Assembly: GCA_002269645.1 (NCBI GenBank)
Contig: NIVC01001848.1
Span: 166,442 to 230,441 of the forward strand
Source of the DNA: Macrostomum lignano
Taxonomy: Eukaryota
Reading direction: 5' to 3'
Length of the DNA: 64,000 nt
Shown here: piece by piece, positions 14,961 to 56,516 of the stretch
Numbering within the stretch: position 1 is the first letter of the stretch
How the letters are laid out: each line of letters opens with the position of its first letter
Made by a program: the position numbers and the translations under genes
Notes under the pieces: model-generated
Database searches by the model: none
Seen by the model: the letters and a program-made list of their open reading frames with translations, nothing else
What the model was told of the DNA's origin: nothing

Positions 14961-16121
14961 TTGAGTATTTAAGCAGTATTTGCTTACAGTAAATTTAACT
15001 ACCATCTGCGCACCCAAAGTTTGCCCACAATTCATTAGTTGTACTTATTTAGCTGGGCTCAATCTGTTTATTTCTGTCCTCTGGGTTTAGTCCCGCTCTC
15101 TCAGTGTCTCTGCCTCAAATCAATACAGTCCCGTGGCAAGCAAGCGCGGAGCTGACAAGCTGAGCACAGCTGAGCTGAGGTCTCGCCAACTCGCCTAAAG
15201 CAGCTGAGTCGTGATTAGGTAGTGCGAGGCGCGCACATTACAGAAAGGGCCATTAGCGGTCTCGGGTTTCCTTGCGGCTGATGGGATTGGGATTTTAACA
15301 GCTCCAAAAGCAGCAACAATCAACCATTTTCCAGACTCAGAGCCGGCCTGCTAGCTCTCTGGAAACAAGAAGCTATTTTCTCTCCTGCATTCTTTCTTTT
15401 AAAGACAACGCCAGGAAACTGCTGCAGCAGCAGCAGTAGCAATAGAAGCAGCAGTGCGAAAGGTTTCCAGCCAGAAGCAGAGAGTCAGGCAAGCGGAGAG
15501 CAGTTGGATACAGAATTTAGCCAGCTTCCTGACTGCATGTTTCAGTCTGTATAGTGAAACTGCCGGCTTGAGTGGTCATGCATGACACTGGGATGAGGAC
15601 TCGACCCCCTGTAGAACTACTTTATCCTCAGTCGGCACGTGTAACGAGCTCTGTCGTCGGGAAGAGTTCCTCAAAAACTGGTCTTACTATCACTCCCCGC
15701 TTCCCGGCTACCCTGCATCGACTATGCAGGTCCAACCTTCCTTCTCTCTTTCTCCTCTTTCAATAGCTCCTCACCCTTCCGTCCGTCTTCTGCTGTGCGC
15801 CCAGTCCCTTCCAAACTGCCGCACGCTCTTCATCGGGAAAATTCTATTTTTCACCGCGTTTCCCGAACGGCGTCTGGTTTGCCTGGCTGGGAGGGGGGCG
15901 GCGGTGGGGAGAGGACTGCCGGGGCAAGGTACTTGCAAAAGGCCGAGGTCCGGATCGCGTATTTTGAGCAAGGCGGTCTAGCGACAAATACCAGAAACTT
16001 TTCTGTCTGAGCAGAGGAAATTGGAAAGCAATCAGCGCTACTGAGCACCTTTGAAATTCAGCAGTGGGAGCAGAAGCAGCAGCAGTAGAAGCAGAAGAAG
16101 AAGCAGGAGCAGAAGACCCAA

Positions 16122-17372: not shown

Positions 17373-17519
17373 CGGTGACTGGAAAGGATTTTCGAATCCC
17401 CTCGGGCCAGTGTGGCCCGGTTCGTATTGTAAGCGGCCGCAACACGCGACAGTCCCTGCGATTAAATCTAGATAGAAACTCCTCACAGATAATCTGCATA
17501 TGCTTTCCATCCCTACCTC

Positions 17520-17990
17520 TTTCTAGCTCTAATCTATCTCTAATCTATCTCTTATCTATCTCTAATCTATCTCTAATCTATCTCTAATCTATCTCTTATC
17601 TATCTCTTATCTATCTCTCATCTATCTCTCATCTATCTCTCATTCATCTCTCATCTATCTCTCATTCATCTCTCATCTATCTCTCATTCATCTCTTATCT
17701 ATCTCTTATTAATCTCTCATCTGTCTCATCCATTTCTAATTTATCTCTAATCTATGTTTTCTATCCCTGTCTTTTTTCTAGCTCTCATCCTCATCTTTTA
17801 TCTCATCTCTTATCACCATCATCCATCTCTCTATCTATCTCTCATCTATCTCTGATCCATCTCTGTCACCTGTCTCTCATCTATCTCTCATCTATCTCTC
17901 ATTCATCTCTCATCTATCTCTAACCTATCTCTAATATCTCTCTTTTCTATCTCTCCTCTATCTCAGTTACCTTATCCATCTCTTATCTAC
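17520..17990. repeat. Degenerate ATCT/TCTCATCTA low-complexity repeat
   Basis: Visible by eye. Confidence 0.85.
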
Positions 17991-20714: not shown

Positions 20715-21380
20715 TAAAGACTACTCAAGTAGAAGGGCGGGGAACTATACGTTGAAGATAGGAAGTTTTCATGTTTTCAGCACAAAAATTGTTATTGCTT
20801 TCGATAGGAGGCAGACCCAATGTTCATATTTTGATATGCTGTGTCTGTCTTATAGCTTTATTGATATTCATAAAGCTGTTGCTTCAGAAAATTAGGACTC
20901 TGTGTTGATTTTCGATTCTACGCACATTGTCTGTACCTAAAAATCATTAAAATGCATGGCACAGCTCCAATCTTTGGTGTTATGAATCTATTTTATCATC
21001 TCTGTTACACATATTGGTGCACAATCAGCTGAGAATGACAAAATAGATTCTTAAAACCAAGGAGCCGAGCCGTGCCATTTTAATTAAGGGCTTTTAGGCA
21101 CATGACATGTTTAATTGTACATGCATGTAGAAATAGGATAAAAAATTAACATAAAATCCCAATTTTCCAAACAAAAAGCTCGATGAATATCGAGCTATAA
21201 GAAAGGCACAGCATATCAAAAGATGAACAATGGGTCTGCCTCCCATCGAAAGAAATAACATTTGGGCTGAAAAAATGAAAACTTCTTATCTCCGCAGTTC
21301 CGGTAAAACCTGCCTTCTAAAATTTTCCTAGAAACGTTGGTTTCCCGTTCTTCCACTTGAGTAGTTCTTGAGTAGTCACA
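20715..21380. mobile_element. Two inverted copies of a 250-300 bp interspersed repeat (foldback-like); third copy at about 57135-57450
   Basis: TGTTATTGCTTTCGATAGGAGGCAGACCCAATGTTCAT at 20790 is mirrored at about 21220-21260; similarity extends outwards (GACTACTCAAGTAGAAG at both ends). Confidence 0.75.
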
Positions 21381-21797: not shown

Positions 21798-24425
21798 TCA
21801 ATCGCAAGGGCAGGTTTTGGCCTCCTCAGCTGCTGGGGCAGCAGCGGAATCTTCAGCAGGCTGCTGGCACCAGCCGCCAGACTTCTGACTGCCACCGGAC
21901 TGGCAGGCCTGCGGGGGGGGAAGATTGTGTAAATGCTGTGAAATTTTTGACGAAACTCTCATAAAACTCTGATTCTGTACTCTGATAACAGCTTTAATAT
22001 GTAACCCCTCAGCTACTGAGCCAACCCCCTCAGCTACTGAGCCAACCCCCTCAGCTACTGAGCCAACTCCCTCAACTACTGAGCAACTCCCTCAACTACT
22101 GGGCCAATCCCCTCAGCTACTGAGCCAATCCCCTCAACTACTGAGCCAACCCCCTCAGCTACTGAGCCAACCCCCTCAGCTATTGAGCCAACTCCCTCAA
22201 CTACTGGGCCAATCCCTCAGCTACTGAGCCAATCCCCTCAACTACTGAGCCAACCCCCTCAGCTACTGAGCCAACCCCCTCAGCTATTGAGCCAGCCCCC
22301 TCAGACACTGAGCCAACTCCCTCAACTACTGAGCCAACTCCCTCAACTACTGGGCCAATCCCCTCAGCTACTGAGCCAATCCCCTCAACTACTGAGCCAA
22401 CCCCTCAGCTACTGAGCCAACCCCCTCAGCTACTGAGCCACTCCCTCAGCTATTGAGCCAGCCCCCTCAGCTACTGAGCCAACTCCCTCAACTACTGGGC
22501 CAACTCCCTCAACTACTGGGCCAACTCCCTCAACTACTGAGCCAACTCCCTCAACTACTGGCCAATCCCCTCAGCTACTGAGCCAATCCCCTCAACTACT
22601 GAGCCAACCCCTCAGCTACTGAGCCAAACCCCCTCAGCTACTGAGCCAGCCCCCTCAGACACTGAGCCAACTCCCTCAACTACTGAGCCAGCCCCCTCAA
22701 CTACTGAGCCAACTCCCTCAGACACTGAGCCAACTCCCTCAACTACTGAGCCAACTCCCTCAGCTACTGGGCCAACTCCCTCAGCTACTGAGCCAACTCC
22801 CTCAGCTACTGAGGCCAACCCCCTCAGCTACTGAGCCAGCCCCTCAACTACTGAGGCCAACCCCCCTCAGCTACTGAGCCAACCCCCTCAGCTATTGAGC
22901 CAGCCCCCTCAGCTATTGAGCCAGCCCCCTCAGCTATTGAGCCAGCCCCCTCAGCTATTGAGCCAGCCCCCTCAGTCATTCAGCCCAAGTGGAGAATCCG
23001 ATTCCAACCAACCCTGCGCTGGCTCGCGGAGTCGCGCCGGTCGCAGTCGGACTTCTTTGCGTTGGTCGGAGAGCAGGGGGCGGCCTGCTCGGAGGCCTTC
23101 TGGTCGGCGTTGGACTGGCAGTTTGCTGGGGCGGTGGCGGCGCACGGCGATTTGCGGCAGCTTTCAGCCGCTCCGGGTGGCATCTCTGCCTCTGGCTGGG
23201 CACGTCGTGCGCACGTGTTGTTCAGGTGGTTGCCAGGCAGACGGTTCGGCAGTCCCAGGTGCCTTTAAAGTCGCCCCAGGGCGAGCCCTCCGAGCGTCCG
23301 ACGCCGGGCAGCAAGTGGCCGAGTTCGTTTGCGATGATCTTAGTGCTGCCGGCCCGGGTGGACGGGTACTGCAGCGGCGCGGAATTGGAAGAGCGTTGAA
23401 TTCTGCGATGCTATATTTTTGTCCAGGAGTTTCAAAAATGATTAACTTGACATTTGAAAAACTGTAAATCACTTTTTATCGTTATAGTTTATTTACTCGT
23501 GTTTATAGCCATATAAATAAAACATACAGTTGTAAACTATATCAGAAGCAAGATACATCGAAACTAAATTGAAACACAAAAGAAATAGGAAAAAGCAAGC
23601 TTAAAGACTTCTAAAATATGCATGCAAGGTACAATGTGAATGAATATTTTCCAAATATACAATATTTTTTAAATTCAAAATACTGCAGGCACCATCACCT
23701 CTTTCAGCTGCTTGGGCACAGTGTACTGTTGCAGCCGGCGAGCCCGGAATGCATCGTCGTACTGAAAGTAAAGACAAAAAAATTGAATTAAAACAAAGCA
23801 TTGCTGATTAATTCTTTGGCTAGACAACTTTGTAAGAACTGACTCAGAAAAATTCTTAAGTTCTTTTTTTATTTAATTTTTTTCACACTATAACCCAAAT
23901 CCACTCTTACTATATACAATTTCTTACCAAATCATAAATTATAAAAAAATATTAAATTGTATTAAAAATCTATAATTTAATTTCATCAATGTGGTCTTCT
24001 GATTTTATAAATATATCGAAGGTAGTATCCAAAGATGTTAAAAGATTTGGCAATGAGTATAATCCTACTAAAAATGGGATCGAAAAAGTTTCTGAATTCA
24101 ATTTGCAATCAGCAGATTCTTCCTTTGAGGGGACTCTGTCTTCTCTACTTCTTAATTTCTGAAAGTTGCTTATAAGTACGAATAAGCGATAAGTTTATAA
24201 AAATTCAGTACGTTCGTGCAATTGCAGTCTCCTCAGTTTTCATATTTCAGTTTTCCTAGTCTCTGTAGTTCAAAACATTATTTTCAAATATCTGAGAACT
24301 TTTTGTGGCTAGGGTAACCAAGTGATTTTGAATTAAAGATATTATATTTCTAAAAAGTACTGATGACGAAGGGCCTTTTAAGAAGCTAATTAACTTACTT
24401 GATTTACAGCAAATCCCGACGACAT
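21798..24425 (-). CDS. CFAP126: Flattop / cilia- and flagella-associated protein 126, 4 exons, about 185 aa, with an apparent 1-nt frameshift at about 23251
   Basis: Exons 24425-24399 (MSSGFAVNQ), 23761-23699 (YDDAFRARRLQQYTVPKQLKE), 23368-23013 (YPSTRAGSTKIIANELGHLLPGVGRSEGSPWGDFKGTWD then, after +1 nt, LPNRLPGN...), 21908-21798 (..EEAKTCPCD*). Matches recalled Flattop motifs SANQYEKAF and IIANDRGHLLP..SPWGSFMGTW. Exon 4 and the GTTGGT donor are less certain. Confidence 0.85.
22015..22975. repeat. 21-bp minisatellite (CCCTCAGCTACTGAGCCAACC) in predicted CFAP126 intron 3
   Basis: Visible tandem units. Confidence 0.96.
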
Positions 24426-24550: not shown

Positions 24551-25483
24551 AGTAGCATTGGTCAGACCAATCTTAAGAAGCTGCAAGATTGGCTACAGCG
24601 ATATTTCAAAGAGCGCCTTTTTCAGCGTCCAATGGCAGAAAAGCGCACGTGCAAATTAAAACCGTTCTGCTTTTCTTCCAAGTTTAGCCAAGTTTGAGGC
24701 GCATTCATGCCCGACGATACCTGAATTTGATTTTGAAAGTTTTATATGTGGCATGACAAAAGTATACTTTCTTGTATTCATATTTATTTATAACTTTTTG
24801 CTTACTAATTGCTACATAAAAACCACCAAAACTCCGCCAACTCATGTGAGTTTACTATTGATTTCTGTATTCTGTATAGAATAGAATGTCTGTATTCTAT
24901 ATGATGTGTGCATTCCCTCTCTGTTTTAACAAAGGTACTAAATTCAAAACTTGAAAGCTTTAAAACTTTAAATTTAATGTTTATGTTTATAATTATAAAG
25001 TTATTGCATACGTACATGGACGCTTAGGGATTCGTGAAGTGAATAAATCGATTTTAATACTTAGCACTTTAAAGGAAAAAGTGCACACATGCAGTAATGC
25101 ATCAAGCACTTAAAGACGAGGATTTTGAAAAGTGAACCGAAGCACGTGCATATGCACACACAGTAGCGAGAAAAATTTTTCTAGTTCCTCTGGCCCTACA
25201 AAATAATCAAATTGCTTGGAAGCACACATGGATACCCAGCGCAGTTTAACAAAATTATAAACTTCACTCACAATTCTAGACCATTGCACATAAGTGTAAT
25301 TCAGGATCTCTAAAAACAAGTCCATGTCACATTTGATCGGGAATAAAACTTTACGACAAACATTTTATGGATTTGCTAACATGCTAATTGCAATCTACCA
25401 GAGTAGCTTTGCCCCCAAAACACCTCTATTTCAAGCACCACCCTCCTATACCCTTCCACAAAAGCCACAGCTCAGCGGTTCAG

Positions 25484-25683
25484 GCGCCGCAGGACCACCA
25501 GGCGACGATGAGGACGTTGGAAGCGGCAGCGGATCTGGTTTCCCTTCGGGTGGCCGCTTGTCCCCTACTACCACTTCTCCGCCACCTCTTCGTCAGCCAC
25601 TACCGTCATTCGCCTGCCTCTGTTCCCAAGTTCAGTGGTCCCAGTTTCAGTCAAGGCCGTCACCCAGGTGCCTCGCCTTGTCA
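25484..25683 (+). CDS. SDC: Syndecan GAG-attachment and mucin-like exon
   Basis: Acidic-flanked Ser-Gly repeats [12 protein letters not shown], then [14 protein letters not shown] in a shifted frame ending at a phase-1 GTAAGA donor. Confidence 0.65.
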
Positions 25684-28600
25684 GTAAGATCTGCATTTTC
25701 TTGCATTTTTTCTCTCTTTCGGCGTCCACATGTAGCAAAACGCGTCAAGGTTTCAATTAGAAAATTTAGAAATCGATTCATTGATAGCAGGACACAACCA
25801 ATCCTTTTGGGAAATCGTTTCCCGGTGGCATAGAGGCGCGCTTCAACTGGCGTCTACTCCCTAGTTGGACTTTTTCCCCAAAATATTTTCCTCTCTAGAA
25901 ATGCAATTTCAAGTCTGGGCAAGACCTTGTGGGACTGAGACTTCAAAACCGAGCAACCAGGAATTGCTGCGAGTCTAAGCGAGAAATAAGGAATCATTCT
26001 GAGTCACTAAAAATCTCAAAAGGCCGTGGGGAATCACTGAGTCTCGGAAAGCAGTGGGGTGTCACTGAGAGTCTCAAAAAGCTGTGGGGAGTCACTGAGA
26101 GTCTCAGAAAGCAGTGGGGAGTCACTGAGAGTCTCAGAAAGCAGTGGGGAGTCACTGAGAGTCTCAGAAAGCAGTGGGGTGTCACTGAGAGTCTCAGAAA
26201 GCAGTGGGGTGTCACTGAGAGTCTCAGAAAGCAGTGGGGAGTCACTGAGAGTCTCAAAAAGCAGTGGGGAGTCACTGAGAGTCTCAGAAAGCATTTGGAA
26301 TCACTGAGAGTCTCAAAAGGCACTTAAGAATCACTGAAAATCTCAGAAAGCAGTGGGGAGTCACTGAGAGTCTCAAAAAGCAGTGGGGAGTCACTGAGAG
26401 TCTCAGAAGGCAGTGGGGAGTCACTGAGAGTCTCAAAAAGCAGTGGGGAGTCACTGAGAGTCTCAAAAAGCAGTGGGGAGTCACTGAGAGTCTTAGAAGG
26501 CAGTGGGAGTCACTGAGAGTCCTGGAAAGCAGTGGAAAATGTTTAAAAGCCTCAGTGTACACAGGTGAATAATAGATTATCTAATACCCTTTAATTCCAG
26601 ACCCCAATGATCCTAGCCAGTCTCCCGGATGCTCGGAGTCCTGCGCTATGATGAGATTTGGCGTCAGTCTTGGATTCCAGGCCGTCTGGCGCCATGACCT
26701 GGCGCGCCCGCAGAGCGGCGCTTTTCGAAAAGCGGCCGCGCCGATAGAAACGGCTCTGGAGGCCGCCTTCAAGGCGTATCCGGGCGAGCAGACCGCTCGA
26801 GTTGTCAGCTTCAGGTTTGAGTCGGCCTCTTCATTGTGATCTGAGGGATGGGACTTGGATAGGCCTGCAGACAACGGAGTGACAGAGCTGAGACAGTGGA
26901 GTGACAGACAGGACAGTAGAAATTACAGGCCGGAAAAAAAAGTGAAATTCAAGACAGTGGAGTGAAATGCAATACATCAGAGTGAAATGCAAGACAGCGG
27001 AGTGAAATGCAAGACAGCGGAGTGAAATGCAAGACAGCGGAGTGAAATGCAAGACAGTGGGGTGAAATGCAAGACATCAGAGTGAAATAGAAGACATCGG
27101 AGTGAAATGGAAGACAGCGGAGTGAAATAGAAGACAGTGGAGTGAAATAGAAGACAGCGGAGTGAAATGCAAGACAGTGGAGTGAAATGCCCGACAGTGG
27201 AGTGAAATGCAAGACATCAGAGTGAAATGCCCGACAGTGGAGTGAAATGCAAGACATCAGAGTGAAATTTAAGACAGCAGAGTGAAATGCAAGACAGTGG
27301 AGTGAAATGCAAGACATCAGAGTGAAATGCAAGACATCAGAGTGAAATGCCCGACAGTGGAGTTAAATGCAAGACATTAGAGTGAAATGCAAGACATCAG
27401 AGTGAAATGCAAGACATCAGAGTGAAATTCAAGACAGTGGAGTAAAATGGAAGACATCGGAGTGAAATGGAAGACATCGGAGTGAAATAGAAGACATCGG
27501 AGTGAAATGGAAGACAGTGGAGTGAAATGGAAGACAGTGGAGTGAAATGGAAGACATCGGAGTGAAATGCCCGACAGTGGAGTTAAATGCAAGACATTAG
27601 AGTGAAATGCAAGACATCAGAGTGAAATGCAAGACATCAGAGTGAAATTCAAGACAGTGGAGTAAAATGGAAGACATCGGAGTGAAATGGAAGACATCGG
27701 AGTGAAATAGAAGACATCGGAGTGAAATGGAAGACAGTGGAGTGAAATGGAAGACAGTGGAGTGAAATGGAAGACATCGGAGTGAAATGCCCGACAGTGG
27801 AGTTAAATGCAAGACATCAGAGTGAAATGCAAGACATCAGAGTGAAATGGAAGACATCAGAGTGAAATGGAAGACATCAGAGTGAAATGGAAGACAGCGG
27901 AGTGAAATGCAAGACAGTGGAGTGAAATGGAAGACATCGGAGTGAAATGGAAGACATCGGAGTGAAATAGAAGACATCGGAGTGAAATGGAAGAGAGCGG
28001 AGTGAAATGGAAGACAGTGGAGTGAAATGGAAGACATCGGAGTGAAATGCCCGACAGTGGAGTTAAATGCAAGACATCAGAGTGAAATGCAAGACATCAG
28101 AGTGAAATGGAAGACATCAGAGTGAAATGGAAGACATCAGAGTGAAATGGAAGACAGCGGAGTGAAATGCAAGACATCAGAGTGAAATGGAAGACATCAG
28201 AGTGAAATGGAAGACATCAGAGTTAAATGCAAGACATCAGAGTGAAATGCAAGACATCAGAGTGAAATGGAAGACATCAGAGTGAAATGGAAGACATCAG
28301 AGTGAAATGCAAGACAGTGGAGTGAAATGGAAGACATCGGAGTGAAATGGAAGACATCGGAGTGAAATAGAAGACATCGGAGTGAAATGGAAGAGAGCGG
28401 AGTGAAATAGAAGACAGCGGAGTGAAATGGAAGACAGCGGAGTGAAATGGAAGACATCAGAGTGAAATGGAAGACATCGGAGTGAAATGGAAGACATCAG
28501 AGTGAAATGGAAGACATCGGAGTGAAATGGAAGACATCGGAGTGAAATGCAAGACAGCGGAGTGAAATGGAAGACAGCGGAGTGAAATGGAAGACATCAG

Positions 28601-30896
28601 AGTGAAATGGAAGACATCGGAGTGAAATGGAAGACATCGGAGTGAAATGCAAGACAGTGGAGTGAAATAGAAGACAGCGGAGTGAAAAAGAAGACAGCGG
28701 AGCGAAATAGAAGACATCGGAGTGAAATGCAAGACAGTGGAGTGAAATAGAAGACAGCGGAGTGAAATAGAAGACAGCGGAGCGAAATAGAAGACATCGG
28801 AGTGAAATGGAAGACAGCGGAGTGGAATGAAAGACAGTGGAGTGAAATGGAAGACATCGGAGTGAAATGGAAGACATCGGAGTGAAATGGAAGACAGCGG
28901 AGTGAAATAGAAGACATCGGAGTGAAATAGAAGACATCGGAGTGAAATAGAAGACATCAGAGTGAAATAGAAGACAGCGGAGTGAAATAGAAGACATCGG
29001 AGTGAAATAGAAGACATCGGAGTGAAATAGAAGACATCGGAGTGAAATAGAAGACAGTGGAGTGAAATGCAAGACATCAGAGTGAAATGCAATACAGCGG
29101 AGTGAAATGGAAGACATCGGAGTGAAATGGAAGACAGCGGAGTGAAATAGAAGACATCCGAGTGATATCACCGCTAGAGATTGAACTTGTGACCTTTGCC
29201 AAAATCAGAGGACAAATTGAAACCCATGAAGTGCTTATGGACTCAAAGCTACCTATACAAGAAATGCTCAGGCGTGCTTGAACTAGACAGAAATGTAAAA
29301 TAGCCATCACTTTTAGACTCCAAGCAAAAGAAGGAGATGGCTGGATATGAACTGGATATAATCTGGAAATAGCATGATAAAAGAGACTTATTTCGGCACC
29401 CCAGTGTCGGCTGTCGGCTGCACTTTGAAGTTTGAGTTTGAATATTTATTATCTCTATTTTACCTGCTCCAGCCTGTGAAAGTTTCAGTCTTTGTTCCTG
29501 TTTACTGCGGCCTGCAGCAGCAACTGACCGCTTCTTCTCCGCTTGAAGCAAATAAAAAACAGAAACTAGTTTGCAAAACCTTACTTTGAATGAAGAACAC
29601 GCATTGGAGTGCCCCGGAACTTCGAACACGGTTTTCTTACCATATTTTTCTGTTTCTGTGTGTCTCCTGTCACAGCTGGATGAGTTTAAAAAAGAGATTT
29701 TTTTCTCTGGCTCTGTCTGCCTTGCGGCCGAACTTGAAAGACTGCACAGTCTTCTATCGGTGAATGCAAGGTTTAAATTAGACATGATACATGTAGTAGC
29801 GTCCATTTTGTATCATTCAGTGTGCTATTTGATATCTTTGGGTGCCATTTTGAAGCATCAGATTTTTTGTCCCCATTCAGATGCCGGTTTGTAGTGTGGC
29901 TATATTTTCTATAGCATAAGGTGTCACTTTTTTGTTCGGTGCCATTTTGTACCAATTTGGTGCCATTTTGCCTAATTCAGGTGCCATTTTGTCTAATTCA
30001 GGTGCCATTTTGCCCAATTCAGGTGCCATTTTGCCTAATTCAGGTGCCATTTAGCCCAATTCAGGTGCCATTTAGCCCAATTCAGGTGCCATTTTGCCCA
30101 ATTCAGATGCCATTTTGCCCAATTCAGGTGCCATTTAGCCCAATTCAGGTGCCATTTAGCCCAATTCAGGTGCCATTTAGCCCAATTCAGGTGCCATTTT
30201 GCCCAATTCAGGTGCCATTTTGCCCAATTCAGGTGCCATTTTGCCCAATTCAGGTGCCATTTTGTTTAATTCAGGTGCCATTTTGCCCAATTCAGGTGCC
30301 ATTTTGCCCAATTCAGGTGCCATTTTGTCCAATTCAGGTGCCATTTTGCCCAATTCAGGTGCCATTTTGCCCAAGCTAGGCCCCAGCCTGTGCATAATTA
30401 AATTATTAACAAATCGGAGGAGTGAACTTTTTGGCTTACTAGTAAAAAACCGATTTAAGCATTACAATCCTCACCTATCATTTATTGCATACTTAATCAT
30501 TTTTTCGACCATTCATTCGCTGCACTCGATGAATTATGGGGGGGGGAGACATCAAAAGTCGATCGGCTAGCGCCAATTTAGCTTCAGCTGAGCAAGGCGG
30601 GGCCGGGGGCTGCGCAGGGAAGGTGCAGAAGAGAGTTTGACTTGCACAGCCAGGTTTCTGCTGTTTCAACTCTGCTGCGGTGGCTTGACTCTGGTTGCGC
30701 TTTCATTACTGGCTGGAAAATTGAATTGGAGACCCGCTCCGCTAGGCACTCATTTAGCCAGAGTGGCGACGGGGAGGCATTGGGAGAATTCTCCCCCCCC
30801 CCAGAACCATCAGAGCCTGTGAAAAGTTGCGCCTCCTCTTAGTAACATTACTTTTACAGTAGATAGCTAGATAAATAAATAAATAAATAAATAAAC

Positions 30897-30975
<79 letters not shown>

Positions 30976-31080
30976 CAGATAGACAGATAGATAGATAGAT
31001 AGATAGACAGATAGATAGATAGACAGATAGACAGATGGATAGATAGATAGATAGACAGATAGATAGATAGACAGATAGAC

Positions 31081-31123
<43 letters not shown>

Positions 31124-31124
31124 C

Positions 31125-31180
<56 letters not shown>

Positions 31181-34100
31181 GGATAGATAGATAGATAGAC
31201 AGATAGACAGATGGATAGATAGATAGATAGACAGATAGACAGATGGATAGATAGATAGATAGACAGATAGATAGATGGACAGATGAGTGACTTACTCATT
31301 ACTAGTTTTCTCACAGCCCAACTCCATCAGGTTGGCTGCCATCCTGACAGCTCCCCTTCTCTCTCATTGAGCCCGGCGTCCAGCGCTTTTCTAACTCAAG
31401 ATCCAGGAACTCAGCACCAACCTCTGACTTGACTTGAGTAGGCCCTGAGTAAGGGGGGAGGTGAGCACAGCGAGGAGAGCGGAGTGATGCGTGGCTGGCA
31501 GCCTGAGGAAAATGGTCTGAAGTGGCGGCAGACGCCGGCCCGCCATGCCTGCAGTCATTTCTAATTCGCTCGCTCTCCATCTCCTGCATTTCCCTTTCCT
31601 GCTCAGAGCCAGAGAGTGGAGCCTCATCTAGGCTCTCCCAGAATCTCTCGCTGAGACATCACGCCTCATTAGTGTTCGCTGAGCACTGCCCGCCTTCACT
31701 CCTTCTCCTCCTCTCTCGTCCACCTCTCTCAGTTTTCCATTTCCCCAACAAAAATATATATATTTGGCTGTGAGAGAGGTTGGGGCATCCGGCCTAGAGA
31801 GTAGGAATGATGACGCTTCGCAACGTAGCTGCTCAATGATGCTGGCTGCTGTTTGGTTGTTGGGTCATGATTGATATAATCCAGTGACTTTTATCAGCGT
31901 TGGTGAGACCCGGCATAACCATCTTGTTTTTTTGCTTTAATTAGCTGAAACCAGGTCTGGTAGCGATGGACTGAACTGAGGGTCTGGTAGCGATGGACTC
32001 AACTGAGGGTCTGGTAGCGATGGACTCAAATGAGGGTCTGGTAGCGATGGACTCAAATGAGGGTCTAGTGACGATGGACTCAACTGAGGATCTGGTAGAC
32101 ATGGACTCAACTGAGGATCTGGTAGCGATGGATTAAACTGAGGATCTGGTAGCGATGGACTAAGCTGAGGGTCTGGTAGCGATGGACTGAACTGAGGGTC
32201 TGGTAGCGATGGACTCAACTGAGGGTCTGGTAGCGATGGACTCAACTGAGGGTCTGGTAGCGATGGACTCAACTGAGGGTCTGGTAGCGATTGTCAAAGC
32301 TGAGGGTCTGGTAGCGATTGTCAAAGCTGAGGGTCTGGTAGCGATTGTCAAAGCTGAGGGTCTGGTAGCGATTGTCAAAGCTGAGGGTCTGGTAGCCGTC
32401 TAACGCTCAACTCCTAAATCAGAGGATTAACAAATGCTCAATTTACTGTTGCTCAGTCACTCAGTAGGCGCAGCAATTCCGCAATTTACAGGAAAGGCTC
32501 CATTGTTGCCGAGGCGTTGGTCATCTCGGTGGGCCATCCGAAGGAGCTGGCGACTGACTATCGGGGGCTGAAGCAGGCTCTGGATGCTCGTCTGCTGGGC
32601 GGCAGCTTTGCTGGCATGCGGCTGCTGCCGGCTCACTACAGATTCTGGCGGCTGGGTGAGCACTGCGGCTGGCATTCGTTGCGATGACAACTGGAGCCGT
32701 TATAATTTTCAATGGCATTCAGTAGTCTGACTTCATTTTACATCATTAATTCCCGACCTTTGCCTCCTTTTGCTCCTCACTCCAGTCGCTGAATTCTCCA
32801 CCCCGGTTTCTCAATTCCCCATCTCGGTTTCTGAATTCCCCATCTCGGTTTCTGAATTCCCCATCTTGGTTTCTCAATTTCTTACCTCGGTTTCTGAATT
32901 CCCCATTTTTGGTTTCTGAATTCCCAATTCGGTTTCTCGATTCCCCACCTCGGTTTATAAATTCCCCACCTCGGTTTCTGAATTCCCCATCTCGGTTTCT
33001 GAATTCCCACCTCGGTTTATAAATTCCTCATCTCGGTTTCTGAATTCCCCATCTTGGTTTCTGAATTTCCCATCTCGGTTTATAAATTTCCTATCTCGGT
33101 TTCTGAATTCCCCATCTCGGTTTATGAATTCCCCATATCGGTTTCTAAATTCCCCATCTCGGTTTCTCAATTCCCCATTTCGGTTTCTCAATTTCCCACC
33201 CCGGTTTCTCAACTCCCCACCCCAGTTACTCAATTCCCCATCTCGGTTACTCAATTCTCTGCAGAGTTGTTGTTTATTAAAGCATCACTCCAGCACTGCA
33301 ATTTTCCTGTTTCCTTTTCACAGAAACAACAGCTGAGGCGCCACCAGCTGCCAGTTCAGCAACGCCTCTACCGTCTGGGAATCGCATTTTTGTGAGTGAG
33401 AATATTCGAGAGAATGCCTAGCTTATTACTCTGAGTAGAGCGTTGTGTTGCAAATTTAAATTTCTAGTGAGAATTAAAAATCGAGAATAGTCTATCACTT
33501 TCCTAAGATTTCTGCTTTATCAAATTGCATCGTACGCTCTAGCAACTGTACTGTCTCCATAGCAACTGTGCCGTCCTCCCTAGCAACTGTACCCTCTCCA
33601 TAGGAACTGTACCGTCCTCCCTAGCAACTGTACCGTCTCCATAGAAACTGTGCCGTCCTCCCTAGCAACTGTACCCTCTCCATAGAAACTGTGCCGTCCT
33701 CCCTAGCAACTGTACCGTCTCCATAGCAACTGTACCGTCTCCATAGAAATTGTGCCGTCCTCCCTAGCAACTGTACCCTCTCCATAGAAACTGTGCCGTC
33801 CTCCCTAGCAACTGTACCCTCTCCATAGAAACTGTGCCGTCCTCCCTAGCAACTGTACCCTCTCCATAGAAACTGTGCCGTCCTCCCTAGCAACTGTACC
33901 GTCTCCATAGCAACTGTACTGTCTCCATAGCAACTGTACCGTCTCCATAGCAACTGTGCCGTCCTCCCTAGCAACTGTACGGTTTCCATAGAAACTGTAT
34001 CGTCCTCCATAGCATCTGTACCCCTCTCTGCAAATTTATTGTTTGCCCTAGCAACTGTACCGTCTTTCTTAGAAACTGTACCTCCAACCTTAGTAACTGT

Positions 34101-35311
34101 ACTCTCTTTGCACGCCACATGTAGACCCTAGCAACACAGAATCAATTTCTGAAAAATATAGTGCATTGAGGCTGAGGAGCAAATTGCACATCCGGTGAGT
34201 AGTGCAAGACAGACAGCTGATGATGATGAGGAAGGGTCGCGGACTCTGGGGAATGCGAGAGCCGGCCGGCGGATGGCGAGTGGCAGCTGGTGACGGCCCT
34301 GCGGCAACAGTGACAGATCAATAACCCGATCTCTCTCGGTCTCTCGGACGGGATAGACGCGATCGAGAAGAGCGAGAGGAGAGTGAGGGAGAGAAGAGAG
34401 AGCTAGGGTGCGGATAGATAAGCTATAGGGACAAAAATACGCGACGCGGCCAGGTCCCGTGGGCGGCTAGCAGCTGATTTTGCCAATCAATTTGCCAAAT
34501 TGCCATTCCGCTCAGATCTCTGATCTCTCTGTGCCTGCCTCTCCCCCTCTCTCTCGCTTCCTTTTTTGAGACGCGGGATCCCCAGGGGATTCTCTCTCAC
34601 GACCCGGGTCTCCAGAGGAGGTGTGGAAAAGACGGTTATTACTGTTGACGCCAGGAATTATTTGTCATGAATATTGTTCAAAACTGTATAGATTAGCTGA
34701 TGGGTTACAAATTTATCAACTGGAGCTGTCGTCACTCCTCATATGGGGAATGGGGGGGGGGTTTTAGTGCCGAAAATCTGACTTACATGTAATTTGGCAT
34801 CCTGGCATATCGTTTTGGTGCCACTGAACCCAACGTTGTACGAGTATAAAGTAACAGCTTAGCACAGATTTGGCATCTCTTAGACCTTAGCTATACCAAT
34901 TTTGCGTCCCTAGCAACCGTCTTGGCGCCTCTAGGAAAATATTTGGCAAACCTTGGCAACCGATTTTGTGACCCTAGAAACCGATTTGGTGGCCCTAGCA
35001 ACCGATTTTGTGGCCCTAGCAACCGATTTGGTGGCCCTACCAACGGATTTAGTGGACCTAGCAACCGCGGTTTGGAGTCCCTAACCAAAGAATTAGGCAA
35101 CCTTAGCAACCAATTTTGTGACCCTAAGCAACCGATTTAGGTGCCCCTAGCAACCGATATGGGAACCTTTTAATTGTTTGCTTAGAGACGCCTTTTTTGG
35201 CTGGAACAAAAGGACTGTATAGTACGCAATAAAAATCCCTTGCATTCTGAGAGACCGAATGAGTCAACGTCCGGAACAGGATGACTCCAGCCCAAATTGC
35301 TTTTGCATCTT

Positions 35312-35394
<83 letters not shown>

Positions 35395-38300
35395 CATCGC
35401 TGGTTGCTCAAGTTGGTCGACTAAAGAAAAACTTACACTTCAAGTAATTTCCCTGCAGAGTGAGGCCTGGCTGAATGAGTCACTGGGCTGCTCAAAATGG
35501 GAATGGGAACTCACAGAAGACGTGGGAGGATTGGGATATTGGCAATTGGGAAACAGAAGAGGATTGGGAGAATGGCAATTAGGGAACAGAAGAGGATTGG
35601 GAGAATGGCAATTAGGGAACAGAAGAGGATTGGGAGAATGGGAATTCGGGAACAGAAGAGGATTGGGAGAATGGGAAATGAGGAACTGGCAGAAAGGAAT
35701 CGGGAGAATGGGAATTGGGGAACTGGCAGAAGAGGATCGGGAGAATGGGAAATGAGGAACTGGCAGAAGAGGATCGGGAGAACGGGAATTGGGGAACTGG
35801 AAGAAGAGAATCGGGAAAATTGGAATTGGGGATCTGGAAGAAGACACGGGAAGATCAAGAGAACCAGAAATGGGAAGGAGAAGGATAGGATTGGTATTAA
35901 ACAAGGGGAAAGCAATTGAGAAAGAAAACAGCGGAGACCAGGTAGATGAAGGTTGGGTTTAGCGAAAGCTTATAAGAAGATATTTTTCAAAGAACTGAAA
36001 GAGAAAGAGAAGAGAAATTGCTTCTAGGGGCAGAGTATCGCAAATCTGAGAGCTCTGGCGCTCATGTCCCGCAGCAGTGCCTTTATCGCTGTGCCTGTCA
36101 GACTGGCTTTAGATGCAGAATTTGGCCCAGCTTCCCGCCGCATCAGCTTATTGCATAATCTTACAGCTGTAGCGGAGCCCGAGTAAGGCCGGGCAAATCT
36201 GATTACAGTGAAGAATCCTGCAGCTAAAGCTTTGAGGATAAAGAGGAGAATTTCTGAATTAGCAATCATGCTTTTATTTCGATAATCCCCTATAGAGCTA
36301 CATGCTAAACCGATCTGAGCTGGGAGGGGGGGGGTTACTTGGCAGATGGGCTTTCAGAGCATGCAGCGCATTTCTCATCTAAATCGACGCCATCGACACC
36401 CAAAATCGACGCCACTGACACCCAAAATCGACGCCACTGACACCCAAAATCGACGCCACTGACACCCAAAATCGACGCCACCGACACCCAAAATCGATGC
36501 CACCGACACCCAAAATCGACGCCACCGACACCCAAAATCGATGCCACCGAAATTCAAAATCGACGCAACCGACACCCAAAATCGACGCCACTGACATCCA
36601 AAATCGATGCCACCGACACCCAATATCGACGCCACTGACACCCAAAATCGACGCCACTGACACCCAAAATCGACGCCACTGACATCCAAAATCGACGCCA
36701 CTGACACCCAAAATCGACGCCACCGACACCCAAAATCGACGTCACCGAAATTCAAAACCGACGCAACCGACACCCAATATCGACGCCACTGACACCCAAA
36801 ATCGACGCCACTGACACCCAAAATCGACGCCACCGACACCCAAAATCGACGCCACCGACACCCAAAATCGATGCCACCGAAATTCAAAATCGACGCAACC
36901 GACACCCAAAATCGACGCCACTGACATCCAAAATCGACGCCACCGACACCCAAAATCGATGCCACCGAAATTCAAAATCGACGCAACCGACACCCAAAAT
37001 CGACGCCACTGACATCCAAAATCGATGCCACCGACACCCAATATCGACGCCACTGACACCCAAAATCGATGCCACTGACACCCAAAATCGACGCCACCGA
37101 CACCCAAAATCGACACGCCACTGACATAAAAAACCGACGCCACGTACACCCAGAATCGACGCCACCGACAACCAATATCGACGCCACCGAGCTCCCATAA
37201 TCGGCGAGACTGACACCTCGAGGGTGGAGGCACTTCAAGGAAGCCTTCAAAAGATTTGCTACAAGCAAGAGGAGTTTTTGTACAGGGATTTTACTGCAGT
37301 AAACAGCCCACAATTCGTGTTGGGGCCGCCAAGCATTGAATTTATCAATTATTACCAGAGCCTGATGGCCTCATTGAGAAGTCACACAGCTCTCAAAATG
37401 CGATTTGACAGCTGGCATTTAGAGCTGAGGGTTCTCACGCATGGTATTAATACCTCTTCTGCTTAAACGGTGTACTCTTACTGTGAGCTAAATAGGACAG
37501 CCGAGAGCTGCGATCGTGTTTGGGTCAATCTATAAATTACTCTCGTCTTTACTAGACTTTTTAAAAACCACTTCCTGCTTTCTATAGTTTGAGCATTTAA
37601 ACTCGACGAGGGCTGCTTCTTCTGGTGTGGGGTGGGGATTACACAAGGCCTCACAGTATTGGCTGATGGAGCCTTTAGATCGATTGCAGTGAGTGAGTAT
37701 ATAATAGCACCCCCTGCACGTCTATCATAAAAGGCATATTTTTCTCCAGTTCTCAACAAGGTACTCAAACTTGGCACGGAACAATTTTCAACTTCGCAAA
37801 CTTCTGACTCTGTTTTTAGACCGAAAATTCTGCAAGGCTGGTCGGTACGAGACGAGAGGGTGAGAGAAATTTATAAAAATGTCTGCATGTCTTTCAAACT
37901 ACGCGCTGTGAAATTCAGTAGAATTGAGTTCCAATCTTACATGTACTGCGAAGTAGATCGAGTCCATCATCCCAAATCCAGTCCCATCATCTCAAATCGA
38001 GTCCCATCATCTCAAATCGAGTCCCATCATCTCAAATCGAGTCCATCATCTCAAATCGAGTCCCATCATCCCAAATCCAGTCCCATCATCTCAAATCGAG
38101 TCCCATCATCCCAAATCCAGTCCCATCATCCCAAATCGAGTCCCATCATCCCAAATCCAGTCCCATCATCCCAAATCGAGTCCCATCATCTCAAATCGAG
38201 TCCCATCATCCCAAATCGAGTCCCATCATCCCAAATCAAGTCACATCATCCAAAATCCAGTCCCATCATCCCAAATCGAGTCCCATCATCCCAAATCGAG

Positions 38301-39645
38301 TCCCATCATCACAAATCGAGTCCCATCATCTCAAATCGAGTCCCATCATCCCAAATCGAGTCCCATCATCCCAAATCAAGTCACATCATCCAAAATCGAG
38401 TCACATCATCCCAAATCGAGTCACATCATCCCAAATCAAGTCACATCATCCCAAATCAAGTCACATCATCCCAAATCAAGTCACATCATCCAAAATCGAG
38501 TCACATCATCCCAAATCGAGTCACATCATCCCAAATCAAGTCACATCATCCCAAATCAAGTCACATCATCCCAAATCGAATCCCATCATCCCAAATCGAG
38601 TCCCATCATCCCAAATCGAGTCCCATCATCTCAAATCGAGTCCCATCATCCCAAATCGAGTCACATCATCTCAAATCGAGTCCCATCATCCCAAATCGAG
38701 TCACATCATCCCAAATCGAGTCCCATCATCCCAAATCGAGTCACATCATCCCAAATCAAGTCACATCATCCCAAATCAAGTCACATCATCCAAAATCGAG
38801 TCACATCATCCCAAATCGAGTCACATCATCCCAAATCAAGTCACATCATCCCAAATCAAGTCACATCATCCCAAATCGAATCCCATCATCCCAAATCGAG
38901 TCCCATCATCCCAAATCGAGTCCCATCATCTCAAATCGAGTCCCATCATCCCAAATCAAGTCACATCATCTCAAATCGAGTCCCATCATCCAAAATCAAG
39001 TCACATCATCCCAAATCAAGTTACATAATCCCAAATCGAGTCCCATCATCCCAAATCGAGTCCCATCATCTCAAATCGAGTCCGGCCATCATCCAGAATC
39101 AAGTCACATCATCCCAAATCAAGTCACATCATCCCAAATCAAGTCACATCATCCCAAATCAAGTCACATCATCTTAAAAGCGAGTCCTATCATCCAAAAT
39201 CAAGTCACATCATCTCAAATGTTTTTGTCAAGGCATCCCAAATAAACTCCGATATAATCCCAAATCCCCTGGCTCCGCAGGCATGACCTTATCTGACCCC
39301 GCCGCCGCCGTGGCCGTCGCTGGCACCGCGGCTCCGGCATTCGCGGCCACCTACTCGTCAGCGGAAACAGTCAGCAGCGGCTTGCCGCTGAACTCCAACA
39401 GCAGCGGGCAGCTGCTGGCCTCACCAGGCCTCCTGGCAGCCGCGGTAGCCGGAGTTGCCGGGGCCGCCGTGCTGCTGCTGATCCTGGCGCTGTTCTGCGT
39501 CCACCGGATTCGCAAAGCCGACGAGGGCTCCTACGCGCTGGGACCGGCGGCTTCGGCCGGCAAAAGCTGGGGCGGAGGCGCCGCCTCTGCCGCCGTGCTG
39601 CACAACGGGTACAGGCGAGCCCCGACCAGGGAATACTACGCGTAG
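25484..39645 (+). CDS. SDC: Syndecan-family heparan sulfate proteoglycan with a SEA domain (signal-peptide exon not located)
   Basis: Predicted exons 25484-25683 ([15 protein letters not shown] sites and S/T-rich; needs +1 nt at about 25577), 26601-26814, 32492-32655, 33324-33391, 36028-36182, 37286-37443, 39281-39645; all GT..AG with matching phases 1,2,1,0,2,1. Last exon has the TM, C1 [12 protein letters not shown] and C2 EYYA*. Confidence 0.72.
25995..26530. repeat. 30-bp minisatellite (GTCACTGAGAGTCTCAGAAAGCAGTGGGGA) in a syndecan intron
   Basis: Visible tandem units, each with the palindrome CTGAGA-G-TCTCAG. Confidence 0.96.
26601..26814 (+). CDS. SDC: SEA domain, first half (perlecan-like)
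   Basis: [53 protein letters not shown] resembles recalled perlecan YFRALVNF..QLEDAGSREF..LESEYLKIPGDQVVSVVF; TTCCAG acceptor and phase-2 donor. Confidence 0.78.
26935..29160. repeat. 20-bp satellite (AGTGAAATGGAAGACATCGG), about 110 units, with a 220-bp higher-order duplication
   Basis: 20-bp period; block 27361-27580 recurs at 27581-27800. Confidence 0.98.
29940..30375. repeat. 21-bp minisatellite (CCATTTTGCCCAATTCAGGTG)
   Basis: Visible tandem units. Confidence 0.96.
30862..31285. repeat. (TAAA)n then (GATA/GACA)n microsatellite
   Basis: Visible by eye. Confidence 0.97.
31960..32397. repeat. 27-bp minisatellite (GAGGGTCTGGTAGCGATGGACTCAACT)
   Basis: Visible tandem units, with two sub-variants. 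Confidence 0.95.
32492..32655 (+). CDS. SDC: SEA domain, second half, with GSIVA motif
   Basis: Phase-2 TTTACAG acceptor gives [15 protein letters not shown]...[21 protein letters not shown], then a GTGAGC donor; absent from the ORF track because it is a spliced fragment. Confidence 0.78.
32785..33255. repeat. 21-bp minisatellite (CCCCATCTCGGTTTCTGAATT)
   Basis: Visible tandem units. Confidence 0.93.
33540..34100. repeat. 20/21-bp minisatellite whose units contain RFX X-box motifs (GTCTCCATAGCAAC)
   Basis: Units TAGCAACTGTACCGTCTCCA and TAGCAACTGTGCCGTCCTCCC. Confidence 0.95.
34905..35160. repeat. Degenerate 21-bp repeat (CCCTAGCAACCGATTTTGTGG)
   Basis: Visible; shares the CCTAGCAAC core with the 33.5-kb array. 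Confidence 0.85.
35310..35392. repeat. (CT)n microsatellite
   Basis: Visible by eye. Confidence 0.98.
35500..35900. repeat. Purine-rich degenerate repeat (GGGAGAATGGGAATT..GGAACAGAAGAGGATT)
   Basis: Visible by eye. Confidence 0.85.
36380..37190. repeat. 22-bp minisatellite (AAAATCGACGCCACCGACACCC)
   Basis: Visible tandem units between predicted exons 36028-36182 and 37286-37443. Confidence 0.96.
37955..39235. repeat. 20-bp minisatellite (TCCCATCATCCCAAATCGAG) with a 300-bp higher-order duplication
   Basis: 38461-38640 is identical to 38761-38940; explains the 461-aa ORF at 37860-39245. Confidence 0.97.
39281..39645 (+). CDS. SDC: Syndecan terminal exon: juxtamembrane region, TM and cytoplasmic C1-V-C2
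   Basis: [37 protein letters not shown]...[11 protein letters not shown]: diagnostic syndecan tail with a PDZ-binding end. Confidence 0.93.
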
Positions 39646-46900: not shown

Positions 46901-47347
46901 GTATGCGTTTCTAACTGACTTGCATTGCTCACTCAATCCCCCACACTCGCACGTTGTGCAGCTCTGGGCGCCGCCTATGGCACAGCCAAGTCTGGCACTG
47001 GCATCGCTAACATGGCGGTGCTGCGACCCGAGCTCATCATGAAGTCCGTGGTGCCAGTTGTCATGGCCGGTATCATCGCCATCTATGGCTTAGTAGTTGC
47101 TGTGCTCATCTCACAGAACATGACGCCTGATTACACCGTTGAGAAGTCGCTCCGTCACCTCGGCGCCGGCCTGGCCGTCGGCCTCAGTGGTTTGGCCTCC
47201 GGCTACGCCATCGGCATTGTTGGCGATGCCGGGGTTCGCGGCACCGCCCAGCAGCCGCGCCTGTTCGTCGGCATGATCCTCATCCTGATCTTTGCCGAGG
47301 TGCTGGGCCTGTACGGCTTCATTGTGGCTCTCATTCTGTCCGTTTAA
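40905..47347 (+). CDS. ATP6V0C: V-type proton ATPase 16-kDa proteolipid (c) subunit, 2 exons, 152 aa
   Basis: Exon 1 40905-40977 ([30 protein letters not shown] donor) and exon 2 46962-47347 ([15 protein letters not shown]...[15 protein letters not shown]); essential TM4 Glu present; 6-kb phase-1 intron. Confidence 0.96.
43050..43240. repeat. About 190-bp imperfect palindrome (MITE/foldback-like)
   Basis: GCCATTTCTATTGGCAACACACA at about 43088 mirrored by TGTGTGTTGCCAATAGAAATGGC at about 43180; similarity extends outwards. Confidence 0.8.
43570..44560. repeat. Degenerate roughly 400-bp direct repeats with internal AGCCTTGACATCTCAG and CTAACCC motifs
   Basis: ATCAGCG.CCCCCGT.G.GAGCCAA starts at about 43572, 43948 and 44401. 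Confidence 0.7.
44660..45772. repeat. 23-bp minisatellite (TATGATTTTTTACATGACGCTTC)
   Basis: Visible tandem units inside the ATP6V0C intron. Confidence 0.97.
45825..45890 (-). pseudogene. tRNA-Cys(GCA)-like remnant or tRNA-derived SINE head
   Basis: Minus strand: A-box-like TAGACTAGATGTG, anticodon arm CTGGA-CTGCAAA-TGCAG, T-arm CTGGG-TTCGAAT-CTTAG; no acceptor-stem pairing. Confidence 0.5.
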
Positions 47348-47569
47348 ACATTCTATCCTGAGTTTGATTGAGTAGAACGGATAAGAGAGAGTCGACGAAA
47401 GAGAGAATGAGCACATTTAAATTGGCTTTTTGAGTTTTTGTTGGTGGGCTTTTAGTTTCAGCTTGATGAAGTGTTTTAATTACTGCTCGGAAATTTTGCT
47501 TGCAATATGCACGTAGTCTACTTAGTCTATTTTTGGGTATACAAGTGCGCATGGAGTTGGAAATCAGCT

Positions 47570-51154: not shown

Positions 51155-56516
<5,362 letters not shown>

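Follow-up and report, generated by a model that had tools for sequence, protein, structure and literature searches.

Textbook syndecans have unstructured ectodomains that are released by proteases. A stretch of 64,000 nt from Macrostomum lignano (assembly GCA_002269645.1, contig NIVC01001848.1, positions 166,442-230,441, forward strand; this whole stretch is called the window below) raises the question whether a SEA domain and a syndecan tail encoded on it belong to the same gene, and whether the resulting protein would cut itself. The window is eukaryotic: its exons are short and GC-rich, its introns are packed with minisatellites, and the only close database matches of the predicted protein are M. 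lignano proteins (98-100% identity). The best explanation overall, in which we have moderate confidence, is that the locus is one syndecan-family gene with 5 coding exons for a predicted type I membrane proteoglycan of approximately 351 amino acids (aa). This protein would begin with a putative signal peptide and an acidic Ser-Gly cluster, continue through a Ser/Thr/Pro-rich linker into a SEA domain and a ~50-aa stalk, and finish with a transmembrane helix and a C1-V-C2 cytoplasmic tail, of which the last residues (EYYA) would form a PDZ-binding end. The analysis showed this architecture, the SEA fold with FRKG/SIVA at its beta2-beta3 hairpin, and a hairpin length as in self-cleaving SEA domains (within a motif, a slash between residues marks the cleavage bond and one between bases the exon border).

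Gene model and syndecan identity

The following features of the gene were assigned in the window.

24753-24845 (+): coding exon 1, with the start codon and a hydrophobic N-terminus, MTKVYFLVFIFIYNFLLTNCYIKTTKTPPTH, a putative signal peptide; donor CAT/GTGAGT
25465-25683 (+): coding exon 2, glycosaminoglycan (GAG) attachment exon with a Ser/Thr/Pro-rich linker; alternative acceptor 25471; donor A/GTAAGA at 25683
25562-25565 (+): C-run CCCC, one base fewer than implied by three public proteins of this gene family
26601-26814 (+): coding exon 3, encoding beta1, alpha1 and beta2 as the N-terminal SEA half and ending in ARVVSF and the AG of a split Arg codon
26815-32491 (+): intron of 5.7 kb dividing the SEA domain and packed with minisatellite arrays, including a 20-nt unit x111 (26941-29165), TAGA x106 (30860-31284) and 21-nt and 27-nt arrays
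32492-32655 (+): coding exon 4, encoding beta3, alpha2 and beta4 as the C-terminal SEA half and ending in HYRFWRL and a G (phase 1)
32496-32498 and 32499-32501: Gly and Ser on the two sides of the predicted scissile bond in FRKG/SIVAEALV
32656-39280 (+): intron of 6.6 kb with at least 6 minisatellite arrays, holding the unsupported extra exons of an initial annotation
near 35320: (CT)n run
39281-39645 (+): coding exon 5, ~50-aa stalk, transmembrane segment, C1, variable region, C2 and stop codon TAG (39643-39645)
39391-39411: NSNSSGQ, in exon 5
39430-39501: transmembrane segment
39502-39534: C1
39631-39642: EYYA

The diagnostic syndecan tail that the initial annotation had recognized in exon 39281-39645, ending in EYYA, was confirmed by Pfam Syndecan (PF01034), which scored 39.9 bits for the last exon alone and 36.8 bits for the full model (cut-off 25.2). 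The C1 motif at 39502-39534 is of the R(M/I/L)(K/R)KKDEGSY type, with one K-to-A change that is common to a paralog (P0003, described below) and the search hit P0006; its DEGSY is invariant in an alignment of 33 sequences. The C2 end EYYA differs from EFYA by a conservative F-to-Y change and was counted as C2, while the paralog ends in EFYA and P0006 in EFFA. The Ciona syndecan in a published alignment likewise ends in EYYA (PMC10381214). The transmembrane segment contains G-x-x-G and small-xxx-small patterns (A-x-x-x-G, G-x-x-x-A) and no strict GxxxG. All 33 tail-matching hits carried the Syndecan domain; six of the ten that were looked up were named syndecan by their source, and the other four were unnamed or otherwise named.

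The SEA exons and the syndecan exon can be assigned to one gene with high confidence, as proposed initially, because the paralog and a related transcript are both continuous, intron positions and phases are shared, and public models join 32655 to 39281. Related sequences were found by an exhaustive HMMER search of 1.84 billion representatives (E<=1e-3), which gave 38 hits and recovered the paralog, the related transcript and a brittle-star protein; word-indexed searches with the spliced protein or a three-sequence alignment were swamped by Ala/Gly-rich words and returned only P0001, P0002 and P0006. The paralog, PAA65095.1 of M. lignano (445 aa), matches query residues 13-247 in one stretch (HMMER E 5.5e-33), and combines a signal peptide, Ser-Gly sites, a SEA domain (FRRG/SILAELLVTSVGHPKQL), a transmembrane segment and the tail in a single chain. 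Its gene interrupts the SEA domain by an intron in the same Arg codon and phase (CG/A, AG/G in the window), and its last exon has the same start and phase (G/GC ATG). From a related sample (SRR26183990, SRR26183987), two contigs of 1.4 kb (L001 and L002) encode a SEA domain (FRRG/SVVAD), HYRF, the stalk, the transmembrane segment and the tail in one open reading frame (ORF). The hydrophobic N-terminus of L002, MVVFYKFAIVFLAVF, is contiguous with the SEA domain and similar to the N-terminus encoded by exon 1. In the window itself, exons 26601-26814 and 32492-32655 have AG/GT borders and exon 39281-39645 is preceded by AG. Both public C-terminal models (P0048 and P0001) splice 32655 straight to 39281 in phase (G/GC, Gly), which gives FWRL-G-MTLSD; P0048 is 100% identical to the window translation, including the product of exon 32492-32655.

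The public annotation itself offers another reading, with two separate genes, one for a secreted protein with half a SEA domain and one for an N-terminally truncated syndecan. Five UniProt models are split in that way: A0A1I8FYC1, J4U4 and IPU8 are 'SEA domain-containing' N-terminal proteins, while A0A1I8FZ97 and J4U8 are 'Syndecan domain-containing' C-terminal ones, and all of them break at the 5.7-kb, mostly tandem-repeat intron 26815-32491. However, the N-terminal models read through the 26814 donor into the intron and stop after FRFESASSL, the C-terminal models begin exactly at the 32492 acceptor without a Met or signal peptide, half a SEA domain cannot fold, and both the paralog and the related transcript are continuous. 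This reading is already contradicted and can be given almost no probability, so that the five split models are corrected here into one gene. Also considered were the extra exons between 32655 and 39281, by which the initial annotation had arrived at a chain of seven: 33324-33391, an unnamed middle one and one ending at 37443. Exon 33324-33391 is flanked by a good acceptor tract and by a GTGAGT donor, and in the paralog a 28-nt microexon does lie between the SEA exon and the final one. Nevertheless, the extra exons are skipped in the two public models, the GC content at third codon positions (GC3) of 33324-33391 is 0.32 against 0.55-0.81 in supported exons, no counterpart of its product was seen in the sequences of relatives, and the product of the putative exon ending at 37443 is unlike any syndecan stalk. 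Between 33.4 and 37.35 kb, 123 open AG...GT segments have a phase that fits the missing middle exon; an in-phase chain there is therefore no more than chance expectation. We thus regard the extra exons as highly improbable.

At the 5' end, an exon start had been placed at 25484, for which public models take the acceptor 25465 or 25471 instead. They also add the signal-peptide exon 24753-24845, which lies outside the range annotated at first. Three public M. lignano models (P0002, P0049 and P0050) have N-termini that match this exon; the N-terminus taken from these models, MTKVYFLVFIFIYNFLL, is hydrophobic, and the exon is unusually AT-rich (GC 0.28). Exon 25465-25683 aligns with the Ser-Gly exon of the paralog. 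The GAG sites of the initial annotation are present at the sequence level as an acidic-flanked Ser-Gly cluster, including LSGSG, at 25504-25542; its frame relative to the rest of the protein hinges on 25562-25565.

M. lignano has at least two diverged paralogs of the SEA-syndecan type, and the gene in the window is one of them. The paralog (PAA65095.1/PAA80286.1, BOX15_Mlig001759g1/g2, named 'Thyroglobulin type-1 domain-containing protein' in UniProt) is 40% identical over the SEA domain, stalk, transmembrane segment and tail, has FRRG/SILAELLVTSVGHPKQL where the window has FRKG, and shares its intron positions and phases. It differs by a thyroglobulin type-1-like Cys-rich module in the exon of the N-terminal SEA half, by the 28-nt microexon, by a span of 89 kb and by its EFYA end, EYYA in the window gene. 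A thyroglobulin type-1 exon was sought in the window gene and none was found. The paralog locus (L003 10001-99198) occupies 89 kb for 445 aa, with one intron of ~72 kb, and its microexon (PSDAKNLKQ, near L003 98271-98298) changes the phase from 0 to 1 right before the last exon.

SEA domain and predicted self-cleavage

Exons 26601-26814 and 32492-32655 join via the split codon AG/G (Arg) to VVSFRKG/SIVAEALV, so that the SEA-like domain with FRKG/SIVA at the junction, as read initially, is borne out by the AG/GT borders, the split Arg codon and the SEA matches. Pfam SEA (PF01390) was the sole family found in the joined product (23.1 bits, E 8e-5; full model 21.1 bits, E 4e-4), and was detected in P0003 (24.1 bits, E 4e-5, profile positions 11-103 of 106) and P0006 (E 1e-3) as well. 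It was the sole ectodomain match for the window protein and P0003, and the sole one under E 0.01 for P0006. A family profile, built on an alignment (A5) that takes in mucin-type SEA repeats, matched the solved SEA domains of ADGRF1 (6e-13), TMPRSS11D (1e-6), HAT-like 2e7v (2e-6), MUC16 (2e-4) and MUC1 (3e-3), while the window sequence alone matched ADGRF1 with E 0.029. An AlphaFold2 model from a 12-sequence alignment gave the topology beta-alpha-beta-beta-alpha-beta with K73-G74-S75 at the beta2-beta3 turn (core pLDDT 77-89, pTM 0.62). With this model, ranks 1-6 of a Foldseek search of the PDB were all SEA domains: 9nrc (6e-6), 7sa9 (target TM-score 0.71-0.72), 8gkl, 8vm1 and 1ivz, with a target TM-score of 0.71 for MUC16 SEA5; below rank 6, unrelated ferredoxin-like folds with much lower TM-scores followed.

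The hairpin is of the type that cleaves itself in other SEA domains. All 12 aligned sequences keep the F, G and S of F-x-x-G-S, and the hairpin of the window protein aligns without gaps to VTQFRNG/SIVAGYEV of ADGRF1/GPR110. The GPR110 SEA domain, which contains GSIVA, is cleaved in cells (PMC2830182), and a PDB chain of it, 8hc0_B (FRNG), terminates at the motif Gly, likewise the MUC1 chain 2acm_A. Self-cleavage of SEA domains is driven mainly by the strain of a short hairpin together with the Ser hydroxyl (PMC10556640), and insertion of glycines into the hairpin abolishes it (PMC10556640; PMC5567652). The initial assignment of G/SIVA to the motif type of self-cleaving SEA domains is thereby upheld, with identical GSIVA and hairpin length in GPR110 and with K-G-S at the modelled turn. 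On the strength of the sequence and the model, we lean slightly towards a domain that would cut itself between Gly and Ser.

If so, hairpin strain would drive an N-to-O acyl shift at the Ser during folding in the endoplasmic reticulum, and hydrolysis would then break the Gly-Ser bond. As in MUC1, matriptase and GPR110, only the shared beta-sheet would then tie the N-terminal part with its GAG chains to the membrane part. With much less probability, pulling on these chains could separate the halves and free the ectodomain without a protease. Among solved structures, the SEA domain of ADGRF1/GPR110 is the best sequence match; GSIVA and FR-x-G are identical, the hairpin has no gap and its cleavage is experimental. 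It differs in that GPR110 belongs to the adhesion G-protein-coupled receptors and has a distinct GAIN/GPS site, sequence identity is low overall, and only the first two thirds of the domain, from the N-terminus, are matched. The transmembrane mucins (MUC1, MUC3/12/13/17) and matriptase share with the predicted protein a heavily glycosylated N-terminal part, a membrane-adjacent SEA domain and G/S(V/I)(V/I), and a non-covalent two-chain product would be expected here as well. In the window protein, however, the cargo is GAG sites and not mucin repeats or a protease, the tail is that of a syndecan, and the shedding of matriptase needs a protease.

Alternative readings

Several observations weigh against an intact, self-cleaving SEA-syndecan. 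The Pfam SEA scores (23.1 and 21.1 bits) lie below the gathering score of 26.4; of the check by profile and fold that had been suggested, the fold part held, with a predicted SEA fold and six SEA domains at the top of the Foldseek ranking, while the Pfam threshold was narrowly missed. Confidence in the AlphaFold model is no more than medium (mean pLDDT 68), and a single-sequence model was poor (pLDDT 46). No transcript or protein of the exact gene across 26814/32492 was present in the collections searched, including a collection of 5.8 billion clusters in which no protein spanned SFRKGSIVA, and the junction therefore rests on homology and intron conservation; an exact contig look-up for P0001 and P0002 also found nothing. 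The donor at 25683, with the window as given, leads to stop codons within SEA exon 3, and the copy could be defective. The ORF of the related transcript (SRR26183990), although complete (MVVFYKFAIVFLAVF...REFFA), has no Ser-Gly dipeptide in its ectodomain; GAG carriage is therefore not constant in the subfamily, and the protein would be, as judged from its sequence, a syndecan-tailed SEA protein without GAG chains. Furthermore, a G/S motif predicts self-cleavage without proving it. The SEA halves of matriptase are tightly bound even after self-cleavage, and its shedding requires a second, enzymatic cut (PMC5567652). Mechanical shedding without a sheddase, as first proposed, goes beyond this evidence, with the matriptase halves staying bound and a protease still required; release of the ectodomain by force on the GAG chains alone seems unlikely to us.

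Whether this copy is intact depends on a single base. Phases had initially been reported to match from the GAG sites to the SEA domain, which was not confirmed for the window as given: with the strong donor at 25683 the frame is broken, and one additional base is needed in 25562-25565. There, at the C-run, the public N-terminal proteins switch frame (tblastn). When one base was added to the run, P0049 was reproduced exactly and an open protein of 351 aa resulted, and the downstream frame of the public proteins is the one that aligns with the paralog (VTRIALPTLPTDLV). As given, only a weak donor at 25537 (CTG/GTTTCC) preserves the frame, which is probably what had allowed the phases to be kept. 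The window copy could accordingly be read as a defective homeolog or allele, in which a real 1-base deletion uncouples the GAG sites from the SEA-syndecan part while intact copies function elsewhere in this duplicated genome. The strong donor leading into stop codons would fit this, as would the extra base in three public proteins from other copies or assemblies and the existence of several near-identical M. lignano copies (two C-terminal and three N-terminal models). On the other side, the difference sits in a homopolymer, the commonest type of assembly error, P0048 and P0049 are apart from that base 100% identical to the window translation, exons 3-5 are intact with high GC3, and the weak in-frame donor 25537 exists. 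Of the two explanations for 25562-25565, a genuine frameshift seems to us less likely than an error of the assembly, because the site is a homopolymer and all else is identical, and a defective copy is given a low probability. The one-base homopolymer problem is hereby flagged in this assembly.

For the SEA domain itself, the competing reading is that it folds and stays uncleaved, serving as a rigid membrane-adjacent spacer or as a module favouring heparan-sulfate priming of the Ser-Gly sites, as proposed for perlecan domain I. Many SEA domains do not cleave, and the best fold matches here are the SEA domains of MUC16 and TMPRSS6. The syndecans of parasitic flatworms have a module, possibly derived from SEA, that no longer shows the hairpin motif, so that cleavage would be dispensable for the function of a flatworm syndecan. 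The layout, with an acidic Ser-Gly cluster directly N-terminal of the SEA domain, is that of domain I of perlecan (HSPG2). Human perlecan domain I, in an approximate sequence, aligned by BLASTP with 27% identity over 91 aa; the similarity runs through the C-terminal half and reaches YRFWRLG (FQFRRLG in perlecan). Layout and alignment account for the resemblance noted initially, the alignment being a lead rather than a test. In the same alignment, however, the perlecan hairpin is two residues longer and has no G-S, whereas the three macrostomid sequences and the SEA-syndecans of echinoderms all keep the G-S pair and the hairpin length, and the identical pentapeptide GSIVA is cleaved in GPR110. 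The SEA domain of perlecan is not known to cleave. An uncleaved domain is considered possible and rather doubtful. The initial description of the SEA domain as perlecan-type found little backing, with no perlecan among the 38 hits of the exhaustive search (E<=1e-3) and with mucin-like SEA repeats from oyster, salmon and a metagenome as the nearest non-syndecan hits. Perlecan also differs in being secreted, very large and multi-domain, and no LDLa, Ig or laminin modules were present in the gene. Returning to the self-cleaving domain, we would call the gene a syndecan with a mucin/GPR110-like, putatively cleavable SEA domain and not a perlecan-syndecan chimera.

Other syndecans and the surroundings of the gene

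To our knowledge, vertebrate, nematode and insect syndecans (SDC1-4, SDN-1, Sdc) have ectodomains without any recognised folded domain and are released by sheddases; they share with the window protein the transmembrane segment and C1-V-C2 tail (PF01034) and acidic-flanked Ser-Gly sites. The build found here, initially read as a chimera, is already described in echinoderms (PMC4336488; PMC10381214). An abundant skeletal protein of the brittle star Ophiocoma wendtii, with syndecan and SEA domains, was reported by proteomics in 2015, when the combination was called novel (PMC4336488). This protein, AJT58577.1 of Ophiocoma (Ophiomastix) wendtii, is named 'syndecan and SEA domain protein' in GenBank; it is identical with our search hit P0029, carries FRHG/SIIT, and aligns with the window protein in one collinear BLASTP alignment from the SEA domain to C1 (E 1e-7). 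A review of 2023 reports SEA domains in holothurian, sea-star and crinoid syndecans, namely those of Eupentacta fraudatrix, Apostichopus japonicus, Patiria miniata and Anneissia japonica, and its supplementary alignment contains the hairpins FSPG/SVKV, ITSG/SLVV and FYEG/SIIA (PMC10381214). In the E. fraudatrix syndecan, Pfam SEA scored 51.9 bits and Syndecan 63.6 bits. With the architecture in GenBank under an explicit name and in the 2023 review, no new protein class is established. In the literature, no paper was found on self-cleavage of a syndecan SEA domain and none on an M. lignano syndecan.

The echinoderm SEA-syndecans resemble the window protein in the signal peptide, acidic Ser-Gly sites, SEA domain with a G/S hairpin, stalk, transmembrane segment and KKDEGSY...FYA tail. 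They differ in belonging to deuterostomes and not to a spiralian flatworm and in their longer stalks, and the window protein has RKADEGSY and EYYA. With M. lignano, a folded SEA domain whose hairpin appears competent for cleavage is now seen, between GAG sites and membrane, in another animal group far from the echinoderms, which suggests that the echinoderm SEA-syndecans are not an oddity. Between flatworm and echinoderm syndecans the SEA domains are ~25% identical, no higher than to unrelated SEA domains, and in tests of specific kinship with tiny databases they scored 11.6 and 34.9 bits, which does not exceed the scores to mucin SEA repeats; no claim of orthology or of common descent of the SEA insertion is therefore made.

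Among the 33 proteins with the most similar tails, three carried a SEA domain and eight a thyroglobulin type-1 domain, so that folded modules in the ectodomains of invertebrate syndecans are not rare. Thyroglobulin type-1 domains are carried instead by many spiralian syndecans (Lineus, Dimorphilus, oyster, flukes, tapeworms). Fluke and tapeworm syndecans (P0007, P0009-P0012, P0014, P0016, P0018) mostly have a thyroglobulin type-1-like module (Pfam in 4 of the 7 scanned individually), followed by a conserved region of ~130 aa. This region aligns to the macrostomid SEA domain around alpha1 and S(V/T)GH, with an insertion of 12-31 residues at the place of the G/S hairpin. Pfam SEA was not found in it, and its match to SEA by hhalign was weak (24 aligned columns, probability 29%). 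By its sequence, the module may be a degenerate, non-cleaving SEA domain.

A broader scenario would place a SEA-syndecan with an intact G/S hairpin in the last common bilaterian ancestor, originally as a pre-cut, force-sensitive joint that was kept in macrostomids and echinoderms and later lost or disabled elsewhere; we consider this very unlikely. Were it true, vertebrates, insects and nematodes would have lost the SEA domain and substituted sheddase sites, parasitic flatworms would have disabled the hairpin by insertion, and syndecans would have begun as mechanosensitive two-chain receptors like MUC1 and Notch-type proteins. In M. lignano, with RNA interference and transgenesis, it is testable whether some syndecans are pre-cut into two chains and whether the release of the heparan-sulfate part is altered by this.

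The introns downstream of coding exon 2 (26001-39220) contain a dozen minisatellite arrays with units of 20-41 nt and up to 111 copies. Together with the TAGA array and the (CT)n run, they account for much of the intronic DNA, and they probably explain the breaks in earlier assemblies and gene models. Nine intronic ORFs on both strands gave no Pfam hit, and Rfam gave no hit anywhere in the window. At 7 kb downstream of the syndecan gene, an exon of the V-ATPase proteolipid subunit c is located at 46919-47351 (+; Pfam ATP-synt_C, 119 bits), and a copy 87% identical to it (L003 2-389) lies 10 kb upstream of the paralog on contig NIVC01001685.1. Besides short dispersed-repeat matches, this exon was the only element common to the window and the paralog locus; at best, it could be a weak remnant of segmental duplication in the distant past. 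An opposite-strand neighbour gene encodes a Yip1-domain protein, with a long open exon at 52302-52931 (-; Pfam Yip1, 41.3 bits). Four GC-rich stretches (8695-9471, 16055-17522, 22835-23475 and 59042-60436) have long overlapping frames on both strands without a Pfam match, and are probably exons of other genes or compositional artefacts. Finally, dispersed repeats at 20766-20837, 20992-21058, 21213-21374 and 57236-57310, and at L003 100394-100663, are short copies, 70-94% identical, that the window has in common with the contig of the paralog and that probably belong to a transposable element.

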